From Takakia lepidozioides (Eukaryota > Plantae > Bryophyta): a DNA stretch of 64,000 nt. Where the stretch lies: the NCBI GenBank assembly GCA_030704615.1, contig CM060731.1, forward strand, positions 2,728,001 through 2,792,000. Reading direction: 5' to 3'. The stretch's first letter is position 1; each line of letters opens with the position of its first letter. The translations under genes and the position numbers were made by a program. Shown piece after piece: positions 20,922-63,651 of the stretch. The notes beneath the pieces are model-generated. The model was not told where the DNA came from. It did not search any database and saw nothing but the letters and a program-made list of their open reading frames with translations.

Positions 20922-21145
20922 GAGGAGTTGCGGTTGCCCAGCGAGGCAAGATGCCGACACTAGCAGCATTCACAGCGGCAGTGAGTTGGCTAGAGAGTTG
21001 CTTGAGGGCAATGCTCATTCAGAGGATGTACCACCTCCGGGGAGAGCAGGATGACATGTATGGTATGGCGGAGTTGCCTACCATGGTTGCTCAGACTCCA
21101 TTGTGGGGCACGAGCAAGGATTTGTAGCGGGATGCTGATCGACGG

Positions 21146-22345: not shown

Positions 22346-22641
22346 CACACATGGGAGGTGCTCGAGATTCAGAGGGAGTTGGCAGCCAAGGCAGCTGTGA
22401 TAGATGAGGTTGGGGATTCTTCTCGGGTTGAGGAGGTCCTCAATGATGAGATGATGGGGCAGGATGAGGTCTTGTCATTGACTGAGCAGGCAGAGAGTAC
22501 TGCTCAAGAGATTGCAGCATAGCAACCACGGGACGCGTCCTCTACCTCTAAGTCTGCTGGACTTAAGGTTGCAGTTACGGAGGACAATTGAGAGCCTGAC
22601 ATTGGACCTATTGTCACTAGAGGAGAGAGACGACGTATACG

Positions 22642-23755
22642 GTGGTTCTTGAGGCTTGCATGAATTGCTTTGCCTCTTGTGCTACGGTGGAGGAGCATGA
22701 GAGACATGTTCAGGTTGTGCATCGACCGGGTTTGGTCAATAAGGATGCGGATGGATTGCGTCGCAATCCACGCACAAGCCAGCAAGATGACACTGGAGCT
22801 CGGTGGCATGGTGAGACGGACGAGGAGATGATGTCGGGATGGCACGCATCTGCATTTTTGTGTATCTTGGCATCGGGAGGTCAGGTTGGACCTACAACAG
22901 GGATGACTGTAGACGGAGTGTCTGAGGACCCTGAGGCTAGTGATGAGCCAGATGGTGCCAGAGATATACATGAGGATTCGGCTGTGTTGGACTACCTCCG
23001 CATGGGAGACACGGCAGCCACTGTGACTGTTGCGCAAGTATGGCTTGCAAAAGGGACACCTAGGAGATTGGGATCTTCAGGTTCCTTGGTTAGCCATGGG
23101 CTACAGGTTCAGCAAACAAACATCACTTGCCTCTTTCTCACCATATTTCCTTCTCTTTGGCCGAGAGCCGGATTTGTCTGCAGCCATTCGTAGGGACACT
23201 ACTCAAGTCCTTAACCTTGACGATCCGGACGTGTGGGTACGTGCATGTGATCAGCGTGAAGAATTGTTCAAGAAAGTCATGCCCATGGCTTTTGAGAACC
23301 TTGCCATTGCACAGCACCGTGATACGTTGAGGTATGCCACTATACGTGGTGGAGGATATCGTCCTGGGGTTCGAAGGTTTAGCCCTGGTGACTATGTTTA
23401 TTTGCAGCAGACTGCTCCTACGACTTTGGATGTTACTGCAGGGCGTGTTATTCTTAGGGTTCGAGAGGTGTTGCCCTCAGGGGTCCTGATCTTGGAGGGT
23501 CGGGATGGCATGACTTGGAAGGACCATGTGCGTAATTGTGCGCCATGTCACCTTCCCAATGTCGATGACAGAGTTGACCCAAACTTGGCAGTGGTACCTG
23601 CAGGTTTGAGGTGCATGCTCTGTGGGTCTGCCAAAGGGGCAGCCACCATGCTGGTGTGTGATCAATGCTCAAGGGGTTGGCATATGGGATGCTTGACACC
23701 ACCTCTTGAGAAGGTTCCTGACGGAGATTGGTTGTGTCCACACTGCTTGGGATAG
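22642..23755 (+). pseudogene. RNase H C-terminus, integrase C-terminus and PHD finger; RT and integrase core deleted
   Basis: VHRPGLVNKDADGL; DWDLQVPWLAMGYR...SPYFLLFGREP; FSPGDYVYL; PHD CMLC...CDQC...WHMGCLTPPL...GDWLCPHC. Confidence 0.85.
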
Positions 23756-24015
23756 TGGTAGTGGACATGACTGGAGGCAGCTAACAAGACATGGGAGGCC
23801 AAGCTCATAGGAGTCAATACATGAGATCCCAAGCTCAAGTTCACAGGTTGCAAGACGGCGACTAATGATGGGGCAACTCTTGCACCCGGCCTCTTGATCT
23901 ATCGAGTTTGAGTGTAGTAGGGATAGTGGTGGAGGACTTAGTGAGGCTATGGTCACTATCACATCTTGTGGCTACCTGGACTTAGAGGGACCTAAGCACC
24001 AGCTAGGGGGGCGAT

Positions 24016-24203
24016 TGTGTGGACTAGTGACTGCCATAGTGGGCAGCATAGTGGCAGCCTAGTGATTGACTAGTTGTAGCCTAGTGGTTGGACTAGTGGC
24101 TGGACTAGTGGTGGACTAGTGGTATACTAGTGTGTGGTGTGCACATGTGTTGTGTGGTTTTGGACAGCGATGTAGTTGTGTAGCGATATGTATGCGCACG
24201 ACA
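24016..24203 (+). repeat. Putative 3' LTR (~188 bp, rich in GGACTAGTG)
   Basis: Starts TGTGTG just after the PPT and ends CACGACA. Confidence 0.65.
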
Positions 24204-24486
24204 CACTGATCATGGGAACGGGGGCCTAGTTATCATTCCTGACGTGACGTGGCGCTGACACGTCGGCCGTCACGTCCGACATGCGTCACGTCACGTCGAA
24301 TCCGGACATTTACCCATGTAATTTTTTTTTTACATTTGACTTTTACGATTTACTTCTACCCTTTGTAATGACATGGCAGCCACGGTGTAAAACAGACGTG
24401 GCCAATTATTAATATTTTTTCATTCTTCTAAAAAAATGATTCAGCCTATATTCACGGTCGCATATAATTTATTATTTTTAATAAAA

Positions 24487-25010
24487 GCAACCGCCCACAT
24501 TGGCGGTCGTTTGTAATTTAATATTTTGTTAAATTAAGCGACCGCCAGTATTGGCGGTCGCCGGTAATTTATTTATTTTTAAATGAAGCGACCGCCCATA
24601 TTGGCGGTCGCCCGTAATTTATTTATTTTTAAATGAAGCGACCGCCTATATTGGCGATCGCCCGTAATTTATTTATTTTTAAATGAAGCGACCTCCAATA
24701 TTGGCGGTCGCCCGTAATTTATTTATTTTTAAATGAAGCGACCTCCAATATTGGCGGTCGCCCGTAATTTATTTATTTATAAATGAAGCGACTGCTGAAA
24801 TTGGCGGTCGCCCGTAATTTATTTATTTTTAAATAAAGCGACCGCCGAAATTGGCGGTCGCCCGTTATTTTTTTATTTTTAAATGAAGCGACCGCCCATA
24901 TTGGCGGTCGCCCGTAATTCTTTTATTTTTAAATGAAGCGACCACCCATATTGGCGGTCGTCCGTAATCTATTTATTTTTAAATGAAGCGACCGCCCATA
25001 TTGGCTAGTC
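24487..25010. repeat. ~51-bp tandem array with palindrome GCGACCGCC-N6-GGCGGTCGC, upstream of the kinase gene
   Basis: About 10 units such as aaatgaagcgaccgcccatattggcggtcgcccgtaatttatttattttt. Confidence 0.95.
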
Positions 25011-25423
25011 GCGCCGCGCTGACACGTAGCAAGGCGCCGCACCTTTTCGAGCATAATGTCATTTTTTTTGGGGGGGGGGGCTGGTGGGCGCCTATATAAA
25101 CCATTCCCCCCTCCTTTTCTGATCACTTTTGCCCCTCTTGTGGTGCGGTTCATTGGCATCCTGTAGTCCTTTCGGACTTCGTTGCTTGGCACTGCCAACG
25201 GGAGGTGCAAAGGTGATTATTTGGGGGGGGGGAGAGGTTTTGTTGGTTTTCTATTGGTCAGTCCCACACACTTGTTCACGGTACAATCATCGTATCACCA
25301 TTTTGCCGTTTCCGGATCTCCGGCAGCCTGTTTTTTTGCAGAAAACTACGAAGACACCATCCACACGCGTTCATTGCCATTTTTCTGAGGTTTTGGACCC
25401 TGTAGTGGGCAAAGGTTTATACA

Positions 25424-26886
25424 ATGTCGGGGGTTGTGAATTCAAGTTCTGGGGCGGGATCGTCTGGGGGGCGGAGGAAGAGAAAACGTGCCCACGAGCG
25501 GGATAGCCAGGTTAACAAGCCAGACTACCCGGGACCGGATGCCTTGGATAGGGTGAAAGAAGTGGTAGCGGATTATTTCAAGGGTAAGGACATAATGAGG
25601 CTGGAGAGTGCTTATGTTAGGCATGGATGGGAGGGGTTTCAGATTTTTCAGCAAAATATGGAGAGAAAAATGACAAACGCTTTGGCGGGGGCTAAGTGGA
25701 CGGCGAACAGGGGCAAGCCGAAGTTCAATCGGTGGATCCAAAGCAGGGCGAAAGACGTCACGTGGAATTTGAGGCAATTAATGCAGACATGGAAGGGTAG
25801 AACAACCCAGGGTCGAGTGTCCTCCGCCGAAGCTGAGTTGATGCGGCGTGTTGAGTATTGGGCTTGCTCGGCAAGTCAGAATTCACATCGCCGGACTAGG
25901 GTTGTCCCTTGGAGGCGGGGTCATCGGGCGGGGAAGGCACAACTGGTCTTTATTACCTGAACTCTACTGCGAAGGTGGTAGAGATTGGCCCTTACAAAGA
26001 AGGAGGGTATGCTAAGGTCCGTCACTGTAGGATTGTTGGCGATTCTAGAATATCGGAGCGTTGGGAGCTAGCGGGAAAAAAACCCAAGTCCAAAAATCCA
26101 GAAAAGGCGTTGAGACAACATAACGACGAGTGTTTGGCAGTGAAGTTCCAGCATCCGGGTGTTATCTCGTATTTTGCTGTGAATGCACGTGAGGTAAAGG
26201 GTTACACTCGCTGGTGGAATGGGGGGACAATACGCGACATGATGAACCTTGACAGAAAATGGGGCAACAATTCGGACAACAGGGTGATTTTGGAACAAAT
26301 GGGAACAGAAGCAGAGTTCCAGGAATGCAATCGCTTGCTTCGTTTCCGGAAAGTGCGCAGTAAACTTGCATGGGCACTGGTGTGCATCATGGATGTTGTC
26401 CACAAGAAAGGTGTCCTGCACAACGACTTGTCCCCCGACAACATCTTGTTGCATTTTCCAGATGGCACCGAGGAGATCAAGATTGGGGTGTGTGATTGGG
26501 GCTTAGTCACCCCATTGGGCATACGCAAAGCCTCGTTGTACCAGTTTGAAAACCAAGACAAGTTGGACCGGGAACTCGCGAAAAGATGGTGGGTGGAAAA
26601 AAATATTGCATCGGTTTTCAATACGAATGTCACGCCCCCCCCCCAACAGGACATGACGTCGGAGGCCTTTGCCGTTGGGAAGATAGCGGTATGAATAAAT
26701 GACGGCGCTCATTATGATCAAAGTATGTTCCATGACCAATCTACGGGAGGTTGTTGACATTCAATGCTACAAAGATTGTACGACAACAACAAAAATGAGA
26801 GAGTCACATTAGCCCATGTAGTACTTCGGTTCATGGGCAAGCCATTCAATTGGCCTGAGCCGAAAGACGTATATAGGACGGAGTAG
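25424..26886 (+). pseudogene. TE-borne intronless protein kinase with an NLS-like N-terminus (frameshift and premature stops)
   Basis: RRKRKR; Gly-loop EGGYAKV; LAGK lysine; HNDLSPDNILL catalytic loop; DWG. Homolog at 49700-51199. Confidence 0.85.
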
Positions 26887-27585
26887 ACCATAGTCTCGTA
26901 GATATGAGATTTCTGGCGGTACAATGGTTCTTTTATGAAGACATAACTCAATTTTGATCGTGCATGTAATAAATAAAGTCCCATTGTAAATATTACATTG
27001 CATATGCTCGACCCTGGCACCTGTCATCGCAACATAAATGGTTTGTGTACTAGCTCACTGTTTACATTTATAATGTTCCAAGGTTTCGGATAGGGTTATG
27101 AGAAAACGATGTATTAGTTCCGTAGGAGCTAGACAACAAACGTCTCATCTCATTCAACTGTGCGACACTACCATGAGAGGCATGGATCGGAAAGTAATAG
27201 GTGCACATGCGACCTCCGAACGTTTGATACTAGGTCTCTACTTAAACGTGCGGAGGTCGTATGTACACCTATTATTTTTTTATCCATGCCACTCATGGTA
27301 GTATCGCCCAGTTGAATGTGATATGGAACGTTTGTTGTCTAACTCATATGGATCCAATATATCATTTTCTCAGTACCCTGTCAGAAACATTGAAACATTC
27401 GCAGTTACAAACAGTGCCACAATACACGGCCGGTTTTGTTGAAATGACATTTGTGAGGTTCGAGCGTATGCAATTTATTATTTACAACGGAATTTTATTT
27501 ACTCGGGGGACCGGTACTGCTGTTGAAGCGCAACTGATGGTGCGAATTCTCTATTGATTGGAGCTGTCACAACCAATGTCAACAA

Positions 27586-27932
27586 TCATATTTACGGTAA
27601 GGTGTTTCATGCTATTGTTGTTCATCTAGCTGAATTTTGTAGTACTCTTTTTGTTATTCCCATGCCAACGTCCTCTGAGACTGTCATGTTCAAACGGATG
27701 TATCAGCCACCCCGGCCAGCTTGCAAGCTACAGCCATGGCCCACCATAAATTGAATGAATTGAAGATTTTGTGCGAAGTTCCTGGTTTCATGTCCGTGGT
27801 GGCTGATACGGAATTCGGAATATGGCAGTCGCAGTGGACCTGATGTTGTTGGCATAGGAGTAGCAAAACGATTCCTAAATAATTCTGCTACATGAACATC
27901 GGCAATATGAAACACCTTGCAGTACATATGAT
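27586..27932. repeat. Imperfect inverted repeat (~85-bp arms)
   Basis: AAGGTGTTTCAT...ATGCCAAC versus GTTGGCAT...ATGAAACACCTT. Confidence 0.75.
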
Positions 27933-28242
27933 TCTTGAGATTGTTTGCACGGATTATTTGTGTTTGTGCTTTCAAGTGACGAACATTTTCGCCATGGTGC
28001 GGAAGACGTGCATTGGCCACATTAAACGGTTGATGTGATACCATTTCACAAATGTATCACATCGCATTTGTGAAAATGTATCACATGAACCGTTCCATGT
28101 GGCCTACGGGAGTCTTCGATGGGTACGAGATCAATGTGGCCTACAAGATCTACTTCCACCAACAAACATGTGATCATTTCAAAACGCTAGAACTTTGAAG
28201 CGACGATGGGCAAGGTTCTTCATCCAGATGTTCAACATGCTG

Positions 28243-28541
28243 AGGTCTTCTGTAATGTCTCTTGTTTCGTAATGAGGTGCTTCTCCAACTCTTATTTTTC
28301 CAATTCTAATATCTTCCATCTGGAACATATCCACACATGCGTATATAACTTAAGAAAAGAAATGACCATCAAAACTGGAAGCTGGGGATGAGGCTTATAA
28401 AAGCTGAGATGGTCATTTGTTTTTTTAAGGATTTATGCACACATATGTGGATCTGTTCCAGGTGGAGAATATTAACATATTGGATAAAGTGGACATGGAG
28501 AAGCACCGCATTACGAGGCAAGAGACACTACAAAAAGAGCT
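28243..28541. repeat. Imperfect inverted repeat / foldback (~130-bp arms, ~40-nt loop)
   Basis: TGTCTCTTG..CGTAATG.GGTGCTTCTCCA...AAATGACCATC versus GATGGTCATTT...TGGAGAAGCACC.CATTACG..CAAGAGACA. Confidence 0.85.
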
Positions 28542-28559
28542 TCAAAGGGCATACCATGT

Positions 28560-30970
28560 AACAGGTCCCAGTATAATCAAAGACGAAACCCCATTCATTC
28601 AATGGACGATTGAATGGTTGCCCATCCAAATGATTTTTGTTTGCTTTCAATCTTTGCCACTATGTTCAACATTCCATGTATCAGGTCCAGGACTAATATC
28701 AGATCAATCGAAATTCATTCAATGGCTCAACGGATGGTTAGCCATCAAAATGATTTTGGTTCGCTTTGAGACTTGGCCACTATGTTCAATGTGCCATGTA
28801 AGAGGCCCCAGAGTAATATGAGATCAATCAAAATTCGTTCAATGGGCCAACGGATGGTTGCCCATCCAAATGATTTTCGTTCGCTTTGAAACTCCCTCTG
28901 ATACGTCCCAGTGTAATACGAGATTAATCAAAAATCGTTCGATTGTCCAATGAGGCGTTCACTTGTCATCTAGTTTTTGTTCAATGCGAAAAAGAAATCC
29001 TGCAATGCGTGCACGGCTATTGCACCCATTGAACGGATGTGGTTGAAGCCCCTCTTTTGCCCGCATGTGCTTGAACATGTGTGGGACACATGTGCGGAGA
29101 CACAACAGATGAATAAATCATTTGCCTCCCCTTCGACGCGCTCCCCCCTCAAGCCATTCCACAATTTAATTGAATTTAAATTTATTTTAAGCCAATAAAT
29201 AGGTTTGCACTACCTTTCAGTGGGGGTTTCTGGCACGTATTGATTTTGTTTTTGGCTCAATTTTGTTCTGCGGCTTCCAACATCCCACGGCTACTCCCTT
29301 GCCAAAATTTGGACCAATAAAAAAAGCCCCCAAAAAAAAAAAATCTCTTCGCTCATTATTGCAGAACTCTCTATAAAGAATGCATGAAGTAGAACACAAA
29401 TCAAAATTGGAGTGCAAAACAGGGAAGAAACTGTGGTTTTGGGTCCAAATGAATTTTGATCGCTCCCAAATTTGGCACGCACGTTGCATATGGCTACATT
29501 ACACGTCCCATTCAAAAACAGAATGAAAAAAAAAATCGTGAGCACGCGAAACACGGTCCAACAGGTCCCAAAGCAATAGTAGCTCCAACAGAATACATTC
29601 AACGGGTGAACGGATGGTTGCCCATCCAAATCATTTTTGTTAGCTTCCAAACTTTGCCAGCACGTTTCAGACACCCTCTCACAGGTCCCGGACTAATATC
29701 AGATCAATCGAAATTCATTTGATGGCTCAATGGATGGTTGGCCATTGAAATGATTTTGGTTCGCTTTGAGACTTGGCCACTATGTTCAATGTGCCATGTA
29801 AGAGGCCCCAGAGTAATATGAGATCAATCAAAATTCGTTCAATGGGCCAACGGATGGTTGCCCATCCAAATGATTTTCGTTCGCTTTGAAACTTGGCTAG
29901 TGTGTTCAATGTACCCTCTGATACGTCCCAGTGTAATACGAGATCAATCGAAAATCGTTCGATTGTCCAATGAGGCGTTCACTTGTCATCTGGTTTTTGT
30001 TCAATGCGAAAAAAGAAATCCTGCAACGCGTGCACGGCTATTGCACCCATTGAACGGATGTGGTTGAAGCCCCTCTTTTGCCCGCATGTGCTTGAACATG
30101 TGTGGGACACATGTGCGGAGACACAACAGACGAATAAATCATTTTCCTCCCCTTCGACGCGCTCCCCCCTCAAGCCATTCCACAATTTAATTGAATTTAA
30201 ATTTATTTTAAGCCAATAAATAGGTTTGCACTACCTTTCAGTGGGGGTTTCTGGCACGTATTGATTTTGTTTTTGGCTCAATTTTGTTCTGCGGCTTCCA
30301 ACATCCCACGGCTACTCCCTTGCCAAAATTTGGACCAATAAAAAATGCCCCAAAAAAAAAAATCCTCTTCGCTCATTATTGCATAACTCTTTATAAAGAG
30401 TGCATATAGTAGATCACAAATCAAGTTTGGAGTGCAAAACAGGGAAGAAACTGTGGTTTTGGGTCCAAATGAATTTTGATTGCTCCCAAATTTGGCACGC
30501 ACGTTGCATATGGCTACATTACACGCCCCATTTAAAAACGGAATGAAAAAAAAATCGTGTGCATGCGAAACACAGTCCAACAGGTCCCAAAGCAATAGCA
30601 GCTCCAACAAAATACATTCAACGGGTGAACGGATGGTTGCCCATCCAAATCATTTTTGTTAGCTTCCAAACTTTGCCAGCACATTCCAGACACCCTCTCA
30701 CAGGTCCCGGACTAATATCTGATCAATCGAAATTCATTCGATGGCTCAACGGATGGTTGGCCATTGAAATGATTTTGGTTCGCTTTGAGACTTGGCCACT
30801 ATGTTCAATGTGCCATGTAAGAGGCCCCAGAGTAATATGAGATCAATCAAAATTCGTTCAATGGGCCAATGGATGGTTGCCCATCCAAATGATTTTTGTT
30901 CGTTTTGAAACTTGGCCAGTGTGTTCAATGTACCCTCTGATACGTCCCTGTGTAATATGAGATCAATCGA
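28560..30970 (-). repeat. 120-bp-monomer satellite with a 1020-bp higher-order unit (~2.3 copies)
   Basis: Blocks at 28921, 29941 and 30961 are in register; same family as 1-3596 in reverse complement. Confidence 0.9.
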
Positions 30971-31416
30971 AATTAGTTTGTGCTTTGAGAACTTTGTGGG
31001 TATGTTCGTAGAAAGATCATAGATTTCGCGAAATGATTATGAAATACGGAGGGACCAGACGAAATTTGTTTGGACCCGGACCGTTCGTAACTCGTTATAA
31101 CTTATTTGTTAACATCAATTTTTCTTGTTCTCCAGCTTTCGGAGTTCATTACCCATATACACGTCATGACCAAATATGACACCATTGTAAATTTGTTTAC
31201 AGGGTGAACTACTTCTTCCCCATCACACGAGTGTAAATGTGAAGAAAACGCTGCTCATGCAATTGAATTTGGAAGGTGTCGCACATGTGCATTGTGTATT
31301 AACAAAATTGGTGATATACAAACTTGGCGGAATGCCATCACTGTGTTTTCCAACAATATTCAAGATACAACAAAAATACATATTGTATATGTGTTACGCT
31401 GCCAGTCATTAAAAAC

Positions 31417-33755
31417 CTAGTTGTCATTGTCTGAAGATGTGGAATTTGATGCTGTGGCCTGATTTGCACTGCCAATTGCCAGAGCTTGTGACCGTGATCT
31501 CGTGGTCAATGAGGGGCCTAATGGCATGTGATCAATTCTGGCCTGCATCCGTCTACTTCGCGGTGAAAGTTGACTTTCTTCTTCACTCTCACGACGTGGC
31601 GGAGGTGGATCGAGAACAAGTGCTCGGGCTGCATGCAAATCGGCAACGAGGCCGTCCACATCCGGCAATACAGCCCCCGAAACACGATGATAACGGTCTG
31701 TCCATAATCGCCTCCATTTCTCTACAACTGCCTTGATGGTACTTTTGAAACTTTCCAACTGCCTCTCGCGGGCCCTGTCCCTAATCATTGTGTTGTTTCG
31801 ACGATAAGCCACCTCGTACGTATTATTCATTCGGCGTTGACATATTATAGCATCTTCCAGTTCGGACAACAACAAATGTCTCCCAATCGGTTGTCGGTCA
31901 TACAATTCGTTCTCCTCTGGCACCCATGGAACCTGTGGGATCCGGATAAACCTGGACCTTCTTTGACTCCAATGCCCTCCCAGATTGCGGCAAAACTGCT
32001 CTCTCTCCCACCAATCTCGAATGCCTCCAGCACGTATGGTTATCTCCCAATCAGATGTGACCCAGAAATATTGGGAATCTTTGATGTATACCGGGTTTCC
32101 GACATGTATGCCATGCATCTCTCTGTCTGCATCCCATACCAAGTTCTTGCCCCAATGCACACAATTCAGAAATGTGTATGGTAGCCCATCCAATGGAAGG
32201 TTGTGTCGATTGTATTCAAAACCTATAGGCATCCGATCCTCCAAGCCCACCAGCTCATAGAAACGGCGATGGATTGGTGTACGACATTCTGGGCAAACGC
32301 TCGTCCGCAAGGCTTGCGGGATAAGACATGTGAGATGGAACATATGTCCACATGATCCAAGCACATGACATCCCTCTGGGCCGTATGGATTCCTACACAT
32401 CGAACAAACTGTGCCATCTGATATCCACGACGGCAAAACGCTTCGTGGTATTTCCTCCCTCTGGGCCGGTTTGATGTGGCTGGTCATCCTTGTTGTGGTG
32501 TCCCACTCTTCCTCTATCTCCAATTCCCAGTTTATGCTTTTGTTCGACCCCGAAATTCTATGCTCACATCGATCGAACATAAAATCCACATTTGCCCAAT
32601 TGATATACCCGGCGAACACACTTGATGCGATGCGGAGATCGTTATACCTTTGCATGTTGGTATAAATGCTATCCACGCTACAGTTCGACATGCGTGCGAT
32701 ACGTCGCAAGCCTGACAGTGCCCGCTCTACCCGTGCTTCTCTGGAGGCCAAATGGGTCGCCCATTGTATCCAATTCTCCCAATCGCCATTCAATGGGACC
32801 CATGTCTAAATCTCCAGTGTTTTGGACAAGCGCCATGCAGTTGTCATGACAATGTCCCGCTCCTTTGTAACGCGGTCGACATCTAATATCGGGTTCATCT
32901 CCGATTGAATGGCGACCCTCGAGCATTCCCCGGTTTCCAGTACTGGTTCTTTTCCTTTCCTCATTCTCTCATCCGCTATTCGCTATTCCTCAACCATGGT
33001 TTCATCGGCCACAGGGTCAAGGACGTCCGTAACTTCCTGAATGATGAGGTCAATACTGCGAACGGGCATCGCAAACTCCGCGTCCAAGTCCACGACGTTT
33101 GTTCGAACCTCATTGTGGACAACAGTGCCTTCATTGTTTGGAGGCATGTCTTGCAATCTAGCTTCCAACTCGGCTATGCGCAGTGTTTGCCAGTCTAGTC
33201 GGTCCTGCAGGGTCCTGATTCGCTGGTCTCTTTCCGCTAGTTGTTCCTCTAACGTTGCAGCTGGTTGTATTCCGAACGTGTCCGGGATGTACTCCAAATC
33301 GTATAGCAACCTTGCGTTCCTCCTACCAACAGTTTGTCAATTCACTGGACGCAAGAGTATGACCTCTACGTACAACATGGCTGCCAATGTGTACGAGATT
33401 TGACCCTTTAAGAGAGGTTGACCCCACAATGTGCAATGCACCTCATTCGCCCTATGCTGGAAATGCAAGTTCGTGCAAGACCTGGACTCTGCGTAATTGT
33501 TTCGGGTTTGCACGTCATGCCTATCCAAAGGCCACAATCGATTGATGTGGTACCATTTCACGAATTTTTTGCATCTCGTCATCGGCCACCGGAACTCTTC
33601 CGGAACATCCTCCCAGCACTCTTCTGTTAGTATGCTAGGGTCACCAAATACTTCCTAATTCAAGTCTTGCCTTGACCATTTGATTTTCTTAAGGGCGGTC
33701 CATGTTCATTGGGGTCATCTCTTCCATGACGGTCATCGTCCTGGCCCTCTGCCAT
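31417..33755 (-). pseudogene. TE-borne RING-H2 protein (diverged paralog of 3689-6221)
   Basis: 458-aa open segment with CSMC...CGHMFHLTC...CPEC. Upstream fragments HINRLWP..RHD and AAMLY.E.ILLRPV match copy A. Confidence 0.85.
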
Positions 33756-34107
33756 TCTACAACAATCGGAACAACACTAAATGAGGTTTTCTAAAAACAC
33801 GTAATTCTAAACCCTTCCCCCGTTAAGTAGGTGTGAAAATAGTTCCTAAAAGCTAATTTTGTAGAATAAAATGATCTTGGAAGCCAGAAGAGGGCCTATG
33901 GGAGCATTCTGCAATGACCTCACAAAAATCGCGGCAAAAAATACCCCCCACCCAGCCAATGGCCTCCTTATCCACGTGTCATGGAATAATGAAATGCCAC
34001 GCACACAAAAGTTGTGTGGAGAGGAAATGAGGGGAGAATAAGCCTCCCTTGGCTTATATCCCCCCTACCCTCATTTCTCGGGCCACGTGCAGGGCGAATC
34101 TTCTAGA

Positions 34108-36495
34108 AGCGACCGCCAACTTGGCAGTCGCTCGATTTTCGGAAAAATTAAAAAATAGGCGACCGCGAGAACTGCCGGTCGCTCCATTTTTCGGGAAAAA
34201 AAAATAAAAAAATGACCACCAGAACAGGCGGTCGCTCCATTTTCGCATCATTTAAAAAAAATTAAAAAAAAAAAAAGCGACCGCCAACATAGGCAGTCGC
34301 TTCATTTTTAAAAACTTAAAAAAAAAAAAAAACGACCGCCAACATAGGCGGTCGCTTCATTTAAAAACAATTTAAAATAAATAAGCGACCGCTAGCATAG
34401 GCGGTCGGTTCATTTTCAAAACACTTAAAATAAATAAGCGACCGCCAACATAGGTGGTCGCTTCATTTTTAAAAAATTTAAAATAAATAAGTGACCGCCA
34501 ACAAAAGCGGTCCCTTCATTTTCAAAAACTTTAAAACAAAAAAACCGACCGACTACATGGGCGGTCGCTTCGTTAATTTTTTTTCAAAAAAAAATAAGCG
34601 ACCGTTAGCATAGGCGGTTGCTTCATTTTCAAAACATTTAAAATAAATAAGCGACCGCCAACATAGGCAGTCGCTTCATTTTCAAAAACTTTAAAAAAAA
34701 TAAGCGACCGCCAACATAGGCGGTCGCTTCATTTTGAAAAAAAAATAAAAAAAATAAGCGACCGCCAGCATTGGCGGTCGGTTCATTTTCAAAACATTTA
34801 AAATAAATAAACGACTGCCAATATAGGTGGTCGATTCAATTAAAAAAAAATTAAAATAAATAAGCGACCGCCAGCATGGGCGGTCGCTTCATTTTCAAAA
34901 CATTTAAAATAAACAAGCGACCGCCAACATAGGCGGCGCTTCATTTTCAAAACATTTAAAATAAATAAGCGACCGCCAACATAGGCGGTCGCTTCATTTT
35001 CAAAAAATTTAAAATAAATAAGCGACCGCCAACATAGGCGGTCGCTTCATTTTCAAAAGCTTTAAAAAAAAAAAAGCGACCGCCAACATACGCAGTCGCT
35101 TCATTTTGAAAAACTTTAAAAAAAGTAAGCGACCGCCAATATAGGCGGTCGCCTCATTTTTAAAAACATTAAAAAAAAATAAGCGACCGCCAGCAATGGC
35201 GGTCGCCCCGACCGCCAACATAGGCGTTCGCTGCATTTAAAAACAATTTAAAATAAATAAGCGACCGCCAGCATGGGCGGTCGCTTTATTTTCAAAATAT
35301 TTAAAATAAATAAGCGACTGCCAACATAGGCGGTCACTTCATTAATTTTTATAAAAAAAAAATAAGCGACCGCCAACATAGGCGGTCGCTTCATTAATTA
35401 AAATAATAATAAAATAAGCGACCACTAGCATTGGCGGTCGCTTCATTTTCAGAACATTTAAAATAAATAAGCGACCGCCAACATAGGCGGTGGCTTCATT
35501 TTAAAACAAAAAAACCGCCAACATAGGCGGTCGCTTCATTTTCAAAAACTTTAAAAAAAGTAAGCGACCGCCAACATAGGCGGTCGCTTCATTTAAAAAC
35601 ATTTAAAATAAATAAGCGACCGCCAGCATAGGCGGTCGCTTCATTTTCAAAACATTTAAAGTAAATAAACGACCGCCAACATAGGCGGTCGCTTCATTTT
35701 CAAAAACTTTAAAATAAATAAGCGACCGCCAACATAGGTGGTTGCTTCATTTCCAAAATAATTAAAATAAAAGCGACTGCCAGTAATGGCGGTCGCTTCA
35801 TTTCCAAAATAATTAAAATAAAAGCGACCGCTAGTAATGGCGATCGCCCCATTTCCAAAAATAAAAAAATAAAAGCAACCGCCAGTAATGGCAGTCGCTG
35901 CATCTTAAAAAATAACCATTACAGCAACCGCCAGAAATGGCGGTCGCTGCATTTTGTAAAAACAAAAACTGCCAGTAATGGAAGTGAGGGGAGGATGACT
36001 GGGGGCTTATATGGCCCCCCCGCCTCATTCATCGCTCCACGTGCAGGGTAGACCTCGTAGAAACGACCGCCACCATGGCGGTCGCTCCATTTCTCCAAAA
36101 AAAAAAAAAAAAACGACCGCCTGTAATGGCGGTCGCTGCATTTATAAAAACAAAAAAGAATTTCAAGCGAAGTGAGGGGAGAATGTCCCGGAGCTTATAT
36201 GCCCCCCTTCCCCCCGCCTCACTCCTCACTCCATGCGCAGGGCACACTTCGTAGAAGCGACCGCCACCTTGGCGGTCGCTCCATTTTCATTTTCAAAATA
36301 ATTAAAATATAAGCGACCGCCATAAATGGCGGTCGCTCCATTTTGATCCAAAAAAACAAAAAAACGACCGCCAGTAACGGCGGTCGCTTCATTTCCAAAA
36401 TAATGACTGGGAGCTTATATGCTCCCCCCCCCTCATTCCTCGCTCCACGCAGAGGGCAGACCTCGTAGAAGCGACCGCCACCTTGGCGGTCGCTC
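34108..36495. repeat. Long (~2.4 kb) array of GCGACCGCC-N6-GGCGGTCGC palindromes with A-tract linkers, upstream of the RING gene
   Basis: Roughly 40 units such as taagcgaccgccaacataggcggtcgcttcattttc. Confidence 0.95.
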
Positions 36496-36767
36496 CATTT
36501 AAATAAAAATGAATGCACAGTTGGAAGCATGACACAATTGTTCTCTATTCCACAAGCAAATAACCGAACACAAACATGAGCAAGTGACGGGGCATTTGGC
36601 CGACATTTTGGCTGGTATACACATGGGCAACATCTTTTATTTTCCAACACATACACAACAGCAATACAAATACTCATAGTGACAATGATCACATTGGTAT
36701 TACTTCAGTACAGAAATATAAACATGTCCACTAAAAAGTGCTGATGCATGCCTACAGCTGTTTTGTT

Positions 36768-39756
36768 TCAATTCCTTCTACTCCTCCGACGGCGGGACGA
36801 AAAAGATCCTAATCCTAATGCTCCGATGGGTTGAAAATCCGGGTCACCCTCGACTTCACTACCGTTGTCATGATCAGTGCTGGAATCGTCCTCCCTATCC
36901 GACCTCATATGTCCAGGCCTTTGAATCTGCAAGCGACCTCGAACCACATTTAGTTCTCTCTGAGGTCGACTCCCGCTCCGGTCTTCAATACCATCCACGG
37001 TATTTGGCCTGTTTGTGGGCCGATCGCCTACAAAAGGTTGGACTGTTCTCTGTTGTTTATGGACTTGGGACGCAATCGAAGGTGGTCTCGAAGGAGGTAC
37101 CGGAGGGGGGACTGCTTGAGATGGATCGACATTAGATGGTCCGGCATGTGAGGAACCACGGGTCTGCTGCGCAACACGTCGGTTAAGGTGGAATTGTAGT
37201 GGCAGGTTGTCATCATCCGAGGCTTTAACTTCCGCCCGGTCTAATGTATCAGAATGATGCATGCGTGTGGAAAACAGATCAACCCTGTTGCTCTTTAATG
37301 CCCGCTGTGTTGATGGGGAGCTGGATCGGTTTTGGCATTGTGGTGGAGCTGGTCGTATCGGTGAGGCATGATCCCGTCCCGTCGACTGTACAATGGGTTT
37401 GACACCATCGTTTGTATGAACAAGGTTGCGTACGTCGATCGGTCCTGCCAGTACATCACCCCTAAGCTCCATTGGGGCTACTACTGGTTTCAGCATGTAG
37501 TGCGGGGCGAGGGTCGACCCCAACTTCATTTTGAGGACCATGTTCTGGGGATGACACAATTGCAACTTCACCTTCATCTGCGATACGCATTTTTTCAAGA
37601 AGATCATCAAAGGTCGGCTGGATATAAGCATCCTTCTCTGTGAATGTAAACCTGTCATACGCATTTTCATGAGCATCATCGGATCCATCTTCACTATCGG
37701 AGGCAGATGATTCCCTCTGAGATGATTATCTCTAAGGCTCAGTATCGTCACTCATCAAATCAGCCTCAGAAGCAGAGTCTTCGGAATGCAAATTCCTCTC
37801 ATACCATGCTGCAGCATCATCCGCTGCCCTCTCACGTAGCAGTCGACAATTGGTATACACATACACCAATTTGTCAGCCTTCGCGGGATTCAACCTGTTG
37901 CGAATCTTGTTGTGAACAAATGAATAACTGCTTCAATTGCGTTCGCAAGATGAGGCAGAGTACACTTGAGCAAGAATACGCTTCGCAATGGGAGCCAATG
38001 TTCTTGCTCCAACTCCAATTAGATCCCACCATTCATGTGGCAGCATATTGAGCTCTTTTGAATCCGGCATGTCCTCAAAAAGGTCGCGGCGATCTGAGAA
38101 GCATTGGTTTTCGGATATAGCTCTCTCTGCATGGTTCGGCGGAGCCAGTCGCATGAGCACTCGCATGAGGCCGGCCTTGGCATCAGCGTCGTCTCGGAGC
38201 ATGGTATTGTCAAGCAAGAATGGATTGAGCAAAGCTCGCACATAATACAAGTCCGTTCGAACCATCGAACGACGGTCGTAAAATGCATCCTCAGCACTGT
38301 CCGCAAGTTCAGGTTCCAAGAAGAAGGGAGGATGCCTCAAGGATTGGACGTGTTTCTCAAGATTTTGCATTAGTAACCATGCCTTGCCCATTACTGGTTG
38401 CTTTTCATCAAACTCCCGCAAGACGATTGACACCGGCTCAACCATATAAACAAAGTTTTCACATTTCTTCCAGAAATCATCGCTGCAAATGTTATTTCGA
38501 ACTTTTCGACTTTTGCCCAATGACTTGGCTTTTCTGGAGTCCCGCAATGTCCGTGTGTACGCATCCCATTGAGGATCGATGCTGGTGTGCTCCAGACTAC
38601 TCTTCACCGTCACGAACTAATCCACCATCAAGAAGTTAGTGACAAAACGAGTTTCGCCTGGATTGCGGAGGTTGTATTTGGGTTCGTGCCTCCTATATAT
38701 TGCTAAATGGATGTGGTGTGTGCGGATGAACGACACAACAGTCTTCGCTCGCTTGACAAGTTGTTTCACCCACCGTTCTTTTCCCCAATCTTCCAAAATG
38801 AGGTAAAGGATATGAGCAGCACAACCTTGATAGTACATATGGGGATAATGTGCCAACAACATGTCTGCAGTGTTTCTCATGTTAGCGGCATTGTCTGTGT
38901 ATATTTGCACGATTCTATCACTTCCGACCTGTTTGATGAAGTTCGTCAATAGTTGGCATTGATAAGGTCCATCTTTCTTCTCGCCGCTAGTGTCGACCGA
39001 TCCCGAGAATTGTTCCCCAGCTAGACATACGAGCATGACATTGAACAACGGTCTGTTTGTGACAGAACTCCATCCATCGGTACATATAGTGTTTCCATAT
39101 TTTCTGATGCACTCGCCCGTCCTATCGTTGACCTTTTGGGTAAACTCGGTCATGGCGTCTTCTAGCAATCATGTACGGAGATTGTGATAAGTCGGAGGCA
39201 CGTACGTGGATCTGGACTCCGAGGTTGCTCTAACGGCAGAAACAAATGCCGGAAGCCTTGCCACAGTAAATGGTATGTTGGCCTCAAAGAAAAACTGCGT
39301 CTATTTTTTATCCAACTGTCTTTTCGCAGACAAGTTAAGACCTTCTTGCATGGATTGCTGCCGTAATCCTCTACTCCGTTGAAGTGTAGGGGTACAAAGA
39401 GGTGTTGAAGCAAGTGTTGCTCCGGCACAATCCACTTGTCCAATGACACCCGTAGCCTCACAAGAGTCGCCCTGGGTGCTAATCAGGGCATCCTGACGGG
39501 AAGATGGAGTGTTCTGCTCAGAGGTCATGTCCAGATCCAAAGACATTGGAATATTGCCTCCACACTGGGTAAAGTGGTTTTTTACCCGCATAGATGCTTT
39601 GGGGCATAAACCCACCCCAACGCTCTTCACACCTTTATAGCCGAGGTGAGCGAGCAACCGATCCTTACGATAAGAAAGTTTTAATGCACATAGGTTGCAC
39701 TCAACACTACTAGTGTTCGGGATTGCCGAATACCAAGGGCTCCATTCCTCCCTCAT
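36768..39756 (-). pseudogene. hAT transposase (BED finger, DDE core, hATC dimerisation domain, long low-complexity C-terminus) with in-frame stops
   Basis: W..ECNLC...LLAHL...C BED finger; TDGWS; TDNAANM; CAAH; ETRF; WW...ILAQVYSASSCERN. Confidence 0.93.
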
Positions 39757-40189
39757 CTTCACCCAATATCCACTCCCCTGGGACCTAGCGATGCAAGCAA
39801 CAAAAAACAATCACCTATAAATGAACGTGTTGTGAATGTAGAGTGCAATGCGATAGCCCAACACTTCTACACCTGTCAGCAACCCAAGTGGGTCGATGTG
39901 GGTTGTAGTGTTGAGCTTATACACAATTTGCTGAAGTGGCTTTGGTGGAAGCCACAACGGCAAAATGTCCGTACCTTCCTCTTGGGCTACACTCTCGTTC
40001 AATGGAAGAGAACATCCAAAACAACCTCAAGTGTTTGCGCCAAAAGAAGTGAGGAGCTTGGTGACCCTCCTCCGTTATATATGATCTAAGAGGGATGAAA
40101 GTGAAATAAAAGTGAAATGAATAAATGACGAACCAATAGCGCCTACCCGAAAAAGGCTGTACAACCATATTTGTTGTAATTTTGAAATT

Positions 40190-41500
40190 AAGCGACCGCT
40201 AATACTACGGTCGCTATTTTTTTTTTTAATGAAAAACAAGCGACCGCCACTACTGTGGTCGCTTTTATTTCCTTTCATTTTGTGCAATATTGCGGTCACT
40301 TCTATTTTGTATATTTTTAAATTTAAGCGACCGCCGGTATGGCGGTCGGTTCATTTGTTAATATATTTAAAATAAAGCGACCGCCAATATGGTGGTCGCT
40401 TTTATTTTTAATATTTAAAAAGAAACGCAATCGCCAGTAAGGCGGTCGCTTTTAATCTTTATATTTTGGTGGTCGTTTGTTTTTCTATACATTTTTTAAA
40501 TTAAGCGACCGCCCATTGGCGGTCGCTGTTTTTTTTATACATTTTTGAAATTATCCGACCGCCATATGGCGGTCGCTTGTTCTGTACATATTTACAAAAT
40601 TATGCGACCGCCAATACGGCAGTCGCTTGTTTTCTTTTTTAAATTAGGCGACCGCCAATGCGACCGCCAATCTTATTTTTTCTTAAAAATAAATTGAAGC
40701 AACCGCCTAGATAGCGGTCGCTATTTCTTTTTTTAATTCAAAAAATAAAGCGATCGCCACTGCGACCGCCAATCTTGCTTTAAAAATAAATAAATTGAAG
40801 CGACCGCCAATATGGCGGTCGCTATTTCTTTTTCTATTTCGAAAAACAAAGCGACCGCCAGTGCGACCGCCAATACGGCGGTCGTTATTTCTTTTTTAAT
40901 TTCGAAAAACAAAGCGACCGCCATAATTGGCGGTCACGTTCATTTTGTTAATTTTCAAAAATATATTTGCCACCGTGCGACCACCAATACGGCAGTCGCT
41001 TGTTTTCTTTTTTAAATTAGGCGACTGCCAGTGCGACCGCCAATCTTGCTCTGAAAAAACAAATTGAAGCGACCGCCAATACGGCGGTCGCTTTTTTTTT
41101 ATAAAAATTCGTAAAACAAAACGACCGCCATAATTGGCGGTCGCGTTCATTTTGTTAATTTTCAAAAATGTATTTGCCACCGTGCGACCGCCAATACGAC
41201 AGTCGCTTGTTTTCTTTTTTAAATTAGGCGACCGCCAATACGCCCGCCAATCTTGTTTTTTTTTTTAAAAATAAATTTAACCGACCGCCAACATAGCGGT
41301 CGCTATTTGTTTTTTTAATTCGAAAAATAAGGCGACTGCCAGTGCGACCGCCTATCTTGCTTTTAAAAAAAAAAAATTTGAAGCGACCGCCAGTGCGACT
41401 GCCAATTTTGCTTTTAAAAAAATAAAAATTTAAGCGACCGCCAATACGGCGGTCGCTATTTCTTTTTTAATTTCGAAAAACAAAGCGAACAGGCGGTCGT
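40190..41500. repeat. GCGACCGCC palindrome array upstream of the transposase
   Basis: Many full and half sites separated by A/T tracts. Confidence 0.9.
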
Positions 41501-42089
41501 GTTCATTTTGTTAATTTTCAAAATGTATTTGCCACCGCCACCATGTCGGCGACGTGGCTGCTTAAGTGGTAGTATTTTACCTGGTACTATTTTTACCAGA
41601 ATATTCCCCGAACCTGACGTGACGGAGGTCTCGTCAGCGTCAGGTCTGATGTGACCTGACGCTGACGGACGGACGTGACGCTGATAACCAGGAACGGGGG
41701 TGAAGTGAGTGGGGACGAAGATTTTGTACCAGGCGTGAGATCATACCATCGTCGTCGTGCCAGACGAAACTAGGTACAGCTATAACTTCTGTCACATGAT
41801 GTGTAGTATGTTTCCATGGATATCCATGTTTCAGTTTGGGTACATCCATACGTGTACGAAAATAAAAATGGTGGAATATGTGTACCCAAGAAAAGGTGTG
41901 GTGGTTGTGCGTGTGTTTGTGTTTCGTCATTACCTTTACATTGTTGATTTCCTATTATGGTTTCGAAAGCCACAAAGGCCAGGTGCAGCTCCCAACATTC
42001 ATCCCTTCACAAATCCATGGGGAGTCGATACATATGCTTTTCATCTGCCTCTCCAAACATACATACAGGTGCAAGAGAACCAACCTCCT

Positions 42090-43190
42090 GGTGGTCGCAC
42101 CTATTTTAAAAATAATAATTGTGCGACCACCAGTAGCGGTCGTCGCAATTGTTAAAATAAAAGAAAAATGTTGTGACCACCCCCCTGCTGGTAGTCGCAC
42201 CTATTTACTGATTTAATAGGTAGTAAGTTAGTACGTAGTAAGGGGGGGTTTCCCTTATATAGCCTCTCATTGCGGTGGGACCCTTCTAGAAGCCCGCCGA
42301 CCCTGGGAGCCTTCTAGAAGGCCCTGGACACATGTCAACCCTACAAGACTCCATATTCTAAATTTAGCCAATTCCTCCATTCTTTTTTTGGACCCCCTCA
42401 TCTCATTCCTTAATACACGTGGCCTTCCTACATAGGCACCCCACTCTAATTCCTGGACCACTCTAGAATCAGGGCCCGAATGAAACTGCTCTACATATTA
42501 TTCGCACCTATTTAACAAAAAGAAAAATAGTCCGACCACCCCCCTGCTGGTGGTCGCAGCTATTTAAAAATAGAAAATTCTGCGACCACCCCCTTGCTGG
42601 TGGTCGCCCCTAAAAAAAAATGGTGCGACCACCCCCCTGCTAATGGTCGCAGTTTTTTTTTTTTTTTTTGGGAAACATCTGGGAGCGACAGCTCACAAAT
42701 CAGGCCCCTTAGTAGTGAGAGGAGAAAATAACCTCTTTCATTTATGCGCCATGAGGCTTAGGAATGGGGCAGCACACACGAACCATACCACACCCATCAA
42801 GTAGCAAGATTTGACCCCAGAATTGTCCGGGTCGCACTCAGTGCACTTAACCAACTGAGCTACTGACTGTTGGTAGATATTAAAAATTCGGAAAATTATA
42901 TGACCACCCCCCTACGACCACCCCCCTGCTGGTGGTCGCACCTATTTGTTTTAAACAAAATTTCTGTGACCACCCCCCTGCTGGTGGGCGCGCCTATTAA
43001 AAAAAAGAAAAATTATGCGACCACCTCCCTGCTGGTGGTCGCACCTATTAAAAATAAATAAAAATCTACGACCACCCCCTTCTGGTGGTCACACCCATTG
43101 AAAAAAATTTGCGACCACCCCCCTGCTGGTGGTCGCACCTAATAAAGAAAAGAAAAAATGATGCGACCACCCCCTGCTGGCGGTCGCAAC
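42090..43190. repeat. GCGACCACC-N7/8-GGTGGTCGC palindrome array upstream of the copy B RING gene
   Basis: e.g. gcgaccacccccttgctggtggtcgc at ~42582-42607. Confidence 0.9.
42652..42868 (-). mobile_element. tRNA-derived SINE (equivalent position to 7047-7264)
   Basis: Reverse complement of the copy A SINE, with a poly(T) run at 42653-42669. Confidence 0.65.
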
Positions 43191-43656
43191 TAGCTTGCAT
43201 AGGGCGCAGCAAGGAAATTGAATTACTAGCGTGCGCAGTTTGATGGCAGCACGCCCCGAGTGTGGAGGGGGGGCTTATAAGGCCTTGGAGGCCATTCTCT
43301 CCCTCACTTTTCTCTACACCAGGACTTGGTGGGCGATGGGATGTTGCATTCCTTATTCTTGAGTCCAAGTGGAGAGGGGTGCTATTGGTTGGCTGGGGGG
43401 TATTTTGGGCCGTTGGTTTCTACGAAATCGATGCTGAGTACCTCCCGGGAAGCCCTCCTCTGGCACCCACGTTTTTTTCATTGCACATTGCGTCATATCA
43501 CTTAGAACTGCGGAGGGAGTGACACGTGCCTCTAGTACTTGGGGAGGATTCATTAGGGAGTAGGATTAGGGAGTAGGATTAGGTACGATTTAGGAGGGTT
43601 GGGAGAGCATTTTTCTTAGCAAACACCTGTCGAGTAGGGGTAAGCCAAAGCCATAA

Positions 43657-46088
43657 ATGGCGGAGGATGAAGACAGAGGAGGTCATCCTAGGGATGACGA
43701 TAATGAACCTGGACCTCCCAAAAAAAAACCAAAAGGGGCCAGGCGCGAACTTCGTTGGGACTTATACAATGACCCCAACATTCTTGCGGAACCAGGTTGG
43801 GAAGTTTGGAGGTTGGGGCAGCGGTGGTCGCTTGGTGACTGCAGGAAATTTGTGGACTGGTGTCACATAAATCGTTTGTGGCCCATAGATAGGCATGATC
43901 CACAAAGCAAACAAAATCAAGCTAGTTTGCATTCTTGCGCCAACCCGCATTTCCGCCACATGGCAGAGGAGGTACATACAACATTGTGGGGTCAACTGCT
44001 CGTCAACAACAAGGTCCCATATTTATTTGCGGCCATGTTGTACACAAAGTTGATTTTATTACGACCAGTGGATTGACAAACTGCCACTGCGAGACGACGT
44101 ACTAGACTATACATGTTCTCTGATATCCCAGACTTGTATATACGTCAGGGGCAGGACATCATATGGTTGGATGGAAACGACGAGGTGGAAGAAGGAGGAA
44201 AGGTAGACCAACCTCTAGATTATACGCCGCAACAGGTCTCCGCAGTCGGGCCTTCAACGTCTGAGGTGGAGGGGGGCGAGGTACGCTCTCCGTTGGAGGA
44301 ACAGTTGCCCGCACATGAACAGCACATCAAGGACCTGCATGACATTGTTCATTTGCAACGGTGACAAATAGCGAAGTTGCTGGAAAGAATGGGGTTGGGG
44401 ACTCTCGACAGCGTACGCGGTGTGCTTCAGGACCCGAGGCCAATCACCAACGAGCAAGACATATTGGCGCATTTGAATATGCCACCAATGGACATTGACC
44501 GCGTCATCAACGGGGTTGACTCAATCGGGCATGGGAATGAAGTGCAAATGCCTGAACTGGACCCGACGAGGATTGAGGAAGAAAGACTTGTGGCGGAGAG
44601 GGCAAGAAAAGGAAAGGACCCCATAGTGGAAATTGGAGAATGTTCAGCCGTGCAAATTACATCGGCCCAGGAACAGGAATTAGAGCAGCTTGTGGGGGAA
44701 TGCGAGCAAGCTAGGGCTATTGCATATCGGTACTCAAATGCCATGTAAATCCGATCGTGGCCATGGTTGCAGGGGAATTGGCGGAATTGGGTGACATGGG
44801 CGGGCCATCTAGCATCGCGAAAAACACGGATAGAAGAAGCGTTGTCCTCCCTCCAACGTGCAGCACATTTGTCGAATCGAAGCGTAGATAACATCTATGC
44901 TAATTTGCAAAGGCACGACACTATGCGTGATGTATTCACGTCGAAGTACACTGGATTCACCACATGGGGTGATGTGGATATATGTTTGAGCACTGTGTGT
45001 ATACAATTTCCGATACCAATAAGAGCATAAACTGGGATTTGGAAGTAGAGGAGGAGTGGGACAACAGGCCGGGGATGTCATCCAACATTCATGAGGATAA
45101 ACGGACGTGGATACCACTGAGCAATCTAGCGTCATGGATAACAGATGGTACGGTGTGTACAATGTGCCTAAACCCTTACAGACCGGAGGGAGGCTATATG
45201 CTTGGTTCATGTGGCCATTTGTTCCACCCCGCATGTCACATATCGGCAACCATGCGAGCCAGCCAATGCCCTAACTGCCGTGGTCCAATCCATCGACGTT
45301 TCTACGAGTTGTTTGGGTTGCAAGACAATATGCCCACGAGATACGAGTACAACCGGTACAACATACCATTGGATGTATCGCCTTACGATTTTTTAAATTG
45401 GCAGCATTGGGGGGAGACAATGACATGGGATGCTCCAAGAGAGATGCACGCCTTGGATGCGAAGACGTTAACTAGGGTTAAAGATCCGGTGACCTTTTGG
45501 GTGACATCCAACTGGGAAATAACTGTGCATGCTAGAGGCATACGTGACCCAGTCCAAATGGAGCTTTTTTGCCGGAACTTGAAAAGGCATTGGAGCTGTA
45601 CCAAACAAAGATTCTTCCGACTGCCTAAGGATCCGTGAGTGCCAGCGGAAAACGATCCATACAATCGCGAACCGATTGGGATAGACCTATTTCTGAGGGA
45701 GTTGGAGGCCGCTAGCATCCGTTGGGAGGATATAAATGAGAGGTAATGGGTGTCTCGTCGAGATGAAGGGCCATTTCTTCCAGAGTTGCGCAGAAACCCC
45801 CAGCAGGAGGAGGTGTTGGACAATTTCAAGGCTGTCATCACGAGTGTTATAAAGTATTGGCAGAACACACGGCGTGACCAAGTTGCCCCTATTCCAGGGG
45901 TGTTCTTGCCACTTCCAAACATATCGGATTTAATTGAAAAATTGCATAAAGCCATAGCAAGAGCGACAAACCCGGCTCTGGCAAATGTGGAAGAGAGTCA
46001 GCACTCGCCTAGAACGCTACGCATGATGGCAAAGGTGGACCACACAACATTGGGTCCCTACGAGGTTCATCCTTTGAACCATTTTTAA
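43657..46088 (+). pseudogene. TE-borne RING-H2 protein, copy B (multiple stops, 3' deletion)
   Basis: Near-identical to copy A. About 220 bp corresponding to ~3597-3818 is missing at ~46057. Confidence 0.85.
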
Positions 46089-49535: not shown

Positions 49536-49699
49536 CCGGTGTACACTGTCACTCTTCAAGATTCGTGGGTGTGGTGCTTGATTATCCCATATGATGGACC
49601 CAGGTGCCATGGCCAAGTAACAAACCATTAAAACATTATGGTACGAGACAAACACAATTGAAAACAACATTTATTCAAACATGATGTACAGTCAGAGGT

Positions 49700-56873: not shown

Positions 56874-63651
<6,778 letters not shown>

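Follow-up and report, generated by a model that had tools for sequence, protein, structure and literature searches.

hAT elements are textbook one-gene DNA transposons, and their autonomous members typically encode a transposase only. With superfamily members such as Ac, Tam3, and hobo, the element described here shares short terminal inverted repeats (TIRs), an 8-bp target-site duplication (TSD), DUF659 and hAT dimerisation domains, and subterminal repeats; it differs from them by two or three further genes under selection. It is a 17.5-kb hAT (DUF659) transposon, present as a defunct copy at 24225–41692 of a 64,000-nucleotide stretch of Takakia lepidozioides DNA (GenBank assembly GCA_030704615.1, contig CM060731.1, positions 2,728,001 to 2,792,000; hereafter the window), and its cargo consists of a kinase gene and a RING-H2 gene. 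The longest plant hAT consensus in the 2017 Repbase set, Gulliver, measures 7,144 bp, compared with 17.5–18.5 kb here, and the same survey found no hAT in Physcomitrella (PMC6027215). The plant hAT TIR consensus, [T/C]AGNGNNG (PMC6027215), is matched in part by the TIR of the moss lineage, which in the window starts with CCTAG and not with YAG.

Accessory anti-silencing proteins have a precedent in TIR elements (bioRxiv 10.64898/2026.08.24.746577). VANDAL with its VANC protein (Mutator-like) and Spm with TnpA (CACTA) have in common with the present lineage the TIR-bounded structure, dedicated accessory genes, and family-specific noncoding repeat motifs (10.64898/2026.08.24.746577); they belong to other superfamilies and use DNA-binding activators as accessory proteins, in place of which the present lineage encodes a kinase and a RING-H2 protein, the latter including a domain for which no match was found. 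A hAT of Pseudocercospora fijiensis that carries histone H3 has likewise multiplied a gene other than its transposase (PMC6710886). The gene in question is an identifiable housekeeping gene of the host, and each of its many copies in the elements is inactivated, in contrast to the long-term selection and the lack of a host parent observed here (PMC6710886). ToxhAT/ToxTA, a 14-kb fungal element, is also a large class II element with cargo; it has been reclassified as a non-autonomous Tc1/Mariner element with a TA TSD (PMC12506042) and therefore sets no precedent for a giant hAT. No description of a hAT with kinase and RING cargo was found in the open literature (Repbase and Dfam lay outside the search), which agrees with the impression of an earlier note, made from the sequence alone, that this multi-gene hAT system is undescribed. 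The accessible part of a review on giant transposons contains neither “hAT” nor “kinase” as a whole word. Ubiquitin-like or phospho-signalling enzymes are carried by Pack-type Mutator-like elements (Pack-MULEs), KAONASHI/ULP1-bearing MULEs, kinase-bearing Mavericks, and the Spok block, all of which differ in transposase and host; none of them is known to combine a kinase gene with one for a RING-H2 protein. The hAT class itself is known; what appears to be new is a lineage of it with several genes, in which kinase and RING are dedicated cargo and a candidate new fold is encoded.

The left TIR of the main element (24225–24235, plus strand) is CCTAGTTATCA, and the right one (41682–41692, minus strand) is its near-complement, matched at 10 of 11 positions. 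Outside of them lies the 8-bp TSD AACGGGGG, at 24217–24224 and, as an exact match, at 41693–41700. A related copy in the window, copy A, carries AACGGGGG a single time (7810–7817) between the same flanks, which identifies the main element as a true insertion; its target was a sister-subfamily element, within the transposase tail. Scanning the whole window for 11-bp TIRs (at most one mismatch) combined with an 8-bp direct repeat yielded 86 matches, among which the 24225–41692 pair was the only one not situated in arrays or inverted duplications at palindromic words. Thus, the TIRs, the TSD, and the empty site claimed in the earlier note were all recovered, and the TSD, the short TIRs (within 5–27 bp), and the DDE transposase each place the element among the hATs. 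Next to the left TIR, a subterminal region (24236–24443) abundant in ACGT and TGACG words resembles the sister end at 52234–52272. The family, which is dispersed, is multicopy, as thousands of contigs from DNA runs with the same species label align to this stretch.

The order between the ends (array, kinase gene on the plus strand, satellite, RING gene on the minus strand, array, transposase gene on the minus strand, array) is the one originally proposed, and it was upheld by Pfam and by repeat mapping. The Pkinase (E 4.6e-8), DUF659 (E 2e-31), and RING (E 8e-6) matches lie at the positions and on the strands first noted; the RING match falls slightly below the curated cut-off. These searches used separate pieces of the genes rather than joined models, all three being broken in this copy. 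The transposase gene (36768–39756, minus strand) comprises a BED-like region, DUF659, CxxH, a C-terminal E motif, and a long, acidic, low-complexity tail of 300 aa. Its D, D, CAAH, and E motifs are visible; the core frame is interrupted by four premature stops, and the tail by a frameshift. An intact relative from another locus, L007, is 48% identical and matches Dimer_Tnp_hAT above the cut-off. The kinase gene (25424–26900, plus strand; end approximate) consists of an N-terminal region of ∼130 aa and a divergent non-RD protein-kinase domain, and is interrupted by premature stops and one frameshift near 25912, which many other copies, found in DNA runs with the same species label, do not share. 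The RING gene (31417–33755, minus strand), broken by a frameshift and stops, encodes an N-terminal domain of ∼120 aa (ringN), a coiled coil, a C3H2C3-type RING-H2 domain, and a W-rich C-terminal region that is conserved. Elsewhere in the family, intact kinase (484–499 aa) and RING (787–1154 aa) genes are found.

The genes of the main element are about 60–65% identical to those of the sister. Between the two, the ratio of nonsynonymous to synonymous substitution rates (dN/dS) was 0.37 for the kinase, 0.23–0.30 for RING, and 0.21 for the transposase tail. Because the choice of alignment pushes values from the pipeline below 1, neutral simulations at the same identity were run through it as a control; they gave means of 0.61–0.79 and a minimum of 0.46, so that both cargo values lie below every neutral simulation. 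Identity by codon position followed the order second > first > third. Kinase and RING are under purifying selection between subfamilies. The kinase β3 Lys, αC Glu, catalytic Asp/Asn, and DFG-position Asp are kept across dozens of homologs. The eight RING ligands are kept too, and 13 of 16 homologs, as well as each of the three copies in the window, show the C3H2C3 pattern.

Might the cargo consist of functionless host gene fragments, captured passively as in Pack-type elements? The window copy and most others are indeed broken, and recent copies are nearly neutral (dN/dS 0.75 for sister versus copy A). Pack-type cargo is recognized by fragments of an identifiable host gene, often with introns, and by neutral evolution, and the cargo displays neither: its homologs are full-length, intronless single open reading frames (ORFs) with promoters of their own, it is present in three genomes, selection between subfamilies is purifying, and the close matches are all unnamed and, with annotated plant genomes covered non-exhaustively, include no named or annotated host parent gene. 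Passive capture is hardly credible on these grounds. The dN/dS values below the neutral control and the lack of a host parent, together with the complete relative, the Sphagnum copies, and the trees described below, bear out the proposal of dedicated accessory genes, and it is very likely that the kinase and RING genes serve a mobile hAT in this capacity. The evidence supports a view of the cargo as accessory genes kept under selection in a lineage of giant hATs, unlike random Pack-type cargo.

A lineage with kinase, RING, and transposase occurs in at least three plant genomes, Sphagnum (peat moss) included. The search for TIR-bounded relatives in other genomes, which the earlier note had called for, returned one complete element, L093 (ENA ERZ25073694), of 18,529 bp with perfect 11-bp TIRs (11/11) and an exact 8-bp TSD. 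Its kinase homolog (plus strand) lies ∼1 kb inside the CAGGGTTGTCA end and is accompanied by a gene with ringN only (minus strand), a ringN-RING gene (plus strand), and a DUF659/hAT-dimer transposase gene (minus strand). TIR and TSD pairs were also found for the Sphagnum copies L075 (three genes between TIR-like ends, TSD 7/8) and L047 (ringN and kinase, exact TSD). L059, L064, and L043 contain kinase, RING, and transposase. These five are decayed copies in JGI contigs, of which L043 is tied to Sphagnum via a neighbouring S. fallax gene. In a further assembly, the RING gene of a relative is intact (1154 aa) and faces an open transposase frame. Distinct kinase loci with a length of 8 kb or more numbered 27; RING or ringN was present in 14 of them and a hAT transposase in four; these counts are lower bounds, as the census reached at most 10 kb into the flanks and the copies are decayed. 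The notion of a fixed accessory gene set has to be qualified: the kinase/RING set is conserved, whereas gene order and orientation vary among lineages, and some lineages have a fourth gene.

Scanning for end motifs has a high background (183 matches versus 137 in shuffled sequence), so only TSD-matched pairs were relied on. Outward-facing ends near kinases are in modest excess (23 versus 8), and a blind TIR and TSD scan of AT-rich loci returned mostly chance pairs. MULE-like ORFs near the kinase at L003, L005, and L006 raised the possibility that the cargo is shared with Mutator-like elements. This was rejected for L003 and L005: hAT ends lie ∼1 kb upstream of the kinase, at L003 and L005 between the MULE-like transposase and the kinase, and L093 is closed by TIR and TSD. 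At L006, no element ends were found. Transposase fragments that appear Mutator-like by eye, without a Pfam match, are also seen in the window (53262–54323, minus strand) and, besides L003, L005, and L006, at L024; they lie outside hAT ends. Two further peculiarities of relatives were recorded. At L006 (6728–8482), a 670-bp inverted repeat (80% identity) separates a ringN gene and the kinase; it recurs at L015 and is a possible source of hairpin RNA. At L002, a repeated gene set near or in the element (1683–7159 and 11436–11744) comprises a NIF phosphatase-like domain and a fragment of a Tet-like 2-oxoglutarate/Fe(II) oxygenase, and the NIF protein is high-copy in its assembly.

The kinase motifs read AxK, E, H-N-D-x-S-x-x-N, and CDWG. 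The protein is non-RD, has Ser at the position of the catalytic-loop Lys, and lacks an APE motif. Its closest solved structures reach a best PDB E of 1.8e-7; among its ESM Atlas neighbours, a Streptophyta cluster comes first, followed by kinases of giant viruses, which is a weak lead. A viral origin of the cargo was considered and rejected, as IMG/VR contained no locus homologous to either the kinase or RING.

In the RING domain, the eight ligands are accompanied by a basic residue after the last Cys, and the canonical Trp is missing. The top Foldseek rows for the model of the whole protein were RING-H2 domains (probability 0.99, E 0.16). Ligands and modelled fold fit a predicted RING-H2 E3 ligase. 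For ringN, whole-protein fold searches were discarded as uninformative, swamped as they were by the RING and the coiled coil. The isolated ringN domain, modelled from 15 sequences, reached a predicted local distance difference test (pLDDT) score of 91 and a predicted template-modelling (pTM) score of 0.85. It had no Pfam and no Foldseek match, a best Z of 2.9 among 48,161 PDB chains, and template-modelling (TM) scores of at most 0.40 in the Atlas. This lack of structural matches is consistent with a new fold for the modelled domain, without proving it. Neither Pfam nor structure comparison revealed homology between ringN and VANC or TnpA. The fourth gene of some lineages combines ringN with a low-complexity linker and a C-terminal motif resembling a ubiquitin-interacting motif (UIM); it is intact at L006 (5336–6463, 375 aa) and also present at L093 (3039–4220). 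The conserved C-terminus of this ringN-only paralog, acidic-L-x-x-A-x-x-x-S-x-x-E, was matched to UIMs by eye and not recognized by Pfam. One N-terminal domain is thus common to a predicted ubiquitin writer and a putative reader.

Each gene present in the main element, and likewise in the sister and in L093, has a GC-rich cluster of a repeated motif on its 5′ side, even when it is internal and far from the ends. In the main element, a 50-bp palindromic array with GCGACCGCC arms (24444–25005; ratio of observed to expected [o/e] CpG 2.3) precedes the kinase gene and is followed by a TATA-like box at ∼25093; a 53-bp palindromic array (34109–36485), also followed by a TATA-like box, lies 5′ of the RING gene, and a second 50-bp palindromic array (40180–41470) 5′ of the transposase gene, where the promoter is less clear. 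CpG o/e in the main arrays is 1.8–2.3, compared with 0.3–0.5 in the flanks. The array motif differs per subfamily (GCGACCGCC, GCGACCACC, or CGGACG-type), so that family-specific repeat motifs in noncoding regions, a trait of VANC- and TnpA-type systems, recur here. VANDAL and Spm elements contain internal arrays as well.

From these features, a mechanism can be proposed. The DUF659 transposase acts on the 11-bp TIRs and leaves 8-bp TSDs, and the window copy inserted into the sister transposase tail and has since decayed. Each gene would form a separate intronless transcription unit driven by the family-specific array and TATA box, so that one element-encoded DNA-binding factor (the BED region of the transposase, or ringN) could switch all genes on together. 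Aimed by ringN, and assisted in some lineages by the ringN-UIM protein as a ubiquitin reader, kinase and RING E3 would act at cognate arrays on the silencing proteins or chromatin marks of the host, modifying or removing them. This would sustain the expression and mobility of the family, in the manner of VANC for VANDAL and of TnpA for Spm. By this analogy, counter-silencing is the likeliest of the roles considered, with a probability judged to be slightly below even. The fuller picture is put forward more tentatively: an ancient hAT lineage with several genes, resident in non-seed land plants, whose kinase, RING E3, and ubiquitin reader, aimed by a new fold at subfamily arrays, may counteract silencing via post-translational modification of host proteins and not through a DNA-binding activator alone.

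Several observations weigh against this proposal. Known anti-silencers are DNA-binding proteins and include no kinases or E3s, and ringN matched no known DNA- or chromatin-binding fold. Kinase activity is unproven, because the protein is non-RD, its catalytic-loop Lys is replaced, and APE is lost. The arrays could be mere transposase-binding sites, and those of the sister, unlike the main ones, are not CpG-rich (o/e 0.6–1.0). No RNA run with the family was found; two putative RNA runs contained only 35–40-nt matches, to a diverged kinase, and hence no clear expression. Finally, the distance correlations given below are inflated by shared host history and decay.

Trees of kinase, RING, and transposase, built from tblastn tiles with X at stops, agree where supported, which answers the question of congruence raised in the earlier note: L043 with L041, L028 with L057, and a larger Sphagnum clade are common to both cargo trees. 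Pairwise distances correlate with rho = 0.78 (kinase–RING), 0.92 (kinase–transposase), and 0.90 (RING–transposase), values read as consistent with co-descent, and not as proof of it, because of the inflation just mentioned. Such co-divergence would also be expected if the cargo regulated the element itself, that is, if the kinase phosphorylated and the RING E3 ubiquitinated the element's own transposase, timing or limiting its jumps, with the arrays as transposase-bound autoregulatory promoters. A kinase and an E3 form a classic phospho-degron pair, the 300-aa acidic transposase tail would be a plausible target, and transposases are able to activate cognate promoters themselves. Yet the cargo is kept in elements with little or no transposase (L047, L075, and the window sister, possibly passive derivatives), and a novel targeting domain in two genes seems to exceed what a single substrate would need. 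Self-regulation is therefore considered unlikely, though worth keeping in view.

Counter-silencing has also to be weighed against selfish and host-serving roles. Genes that are paired and inherited together, one of them a kinase without a close host relative, could form a toxin–antidote or spore-killing system, in which a toxic kinase, neutralised by the E3 or the ringN-UIM protein, favours the cells or spores inheriting the element in a haploid-dominant plant. Kinase killers are known from giant fungal mobile elements (Spok), and kinase cargo from nematode Mavericks. Drive would, however, be diluted in a multicopy, dispersed family; dead copies lose both genes rather than sparing the antidote, and RING genes occur without a kinase in view (L007 and L008, both short contigs), which makes this reading distinctly unlikely. 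The alternative that the genes serve plant signalling or defence, are spread by the transposon, and are in some copies domesticated, draws on two sets of identical, intact RING-family proteins recovered from 8–10 sequencing runs, L094–L098 (885 aa) and L008–L012 (787 aa). Both sets may represent active or domesticated copies. On the upstream side of its gene, L094 has a hAT-like end that faces away and none that faces the gene, whereas the intact RING gene of L008, a contig ending in a perfect TIR, lies 500 bp from that TIR. As most genomic copies are pseudogenes and the promoter arrays follow the element subfamily and not the host, a benefit to the host appears improbable.

The hAT superfamily is evidently able to evolve a multi-gene, virus-like organisation, with elements of 17–19 kb and a selected kinase and E3-like gene in Sphagnum and two other plant genomes. 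The intact genes (RING, kinase, and an open transposase frame) make counter-silencing by a plant DNA transposon directly testable outside Arabidopsis. In the annotation of bryophyte-type genomes, copies of this family may lead to overestimates of the number of kinase and RING genes.

The sister subfamily element that received the insertion (41701–52288, minus strand) contains an array, the RING gene (43657–46058, plus strand), a satellite, the kinase gene (51200–49700, minus strand), a further array, and a TIR-like end; its arrays have GCGACCACC arms. A mirrored layout spanning 14575–52288 had been suggested for it. On the kinase side, the end at 52288 was confirmed and is similar to the left end of the main element; the boundary at 14575 was rejected, as neither a TIR nor a TSD partner is present there. 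Of the sister transposase, the window contains the tail alone (14815–15246, plus strand), with core and far end missing, and the element is partial. Copy A (1–8060, minus strand) does repeat part of the sister, as had been stated: it comprises satellite, RING gene (3800–6221), array, and the transposase tail with the empty site. Immediately adjoining, a short DUF659-like piece (8064–8135, minus strand) is fused directly to the tail, which suggests an internal deletion derivative.

The satellite of the main element (28550–30978), a lineage-specific filler, is built from a ∼1-kb unit of 120-bp subrepeats. Its identity to the sister block is 89%, against only ∼60% for the genes, and its orientation with respect to them is reversed; L093 lacks it. 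This suggests a later exchange between subfamilies, and the satellite, which had been counted as part of the shared layout, does not belong to the ancestral gene set. In the sister, the satellite block (46059–48812) also includes a copy of 65–70% identity in the other orientation.

Two neighbouring features of the window remain to be mentioned. A retroelement-like insertion at 15251–24203 has TGTC...GACA ends and a 4-bp TSD, CACT, that is single at the empty site; it encodes gag-like, protease-like, C5 DNA methyltransferase, integrase C-terminus-like, and PHD pieces and has no pair of long terminal repeats. Many contigs run from its right end via GC into its left end (a GACA-GC-TGTC palindrome), and its summed depth is ∼30 times that of the hAT. 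Farther downstream, at 62865–63254 (minus strand), lies an exon of a probable host receptor-like kinase.

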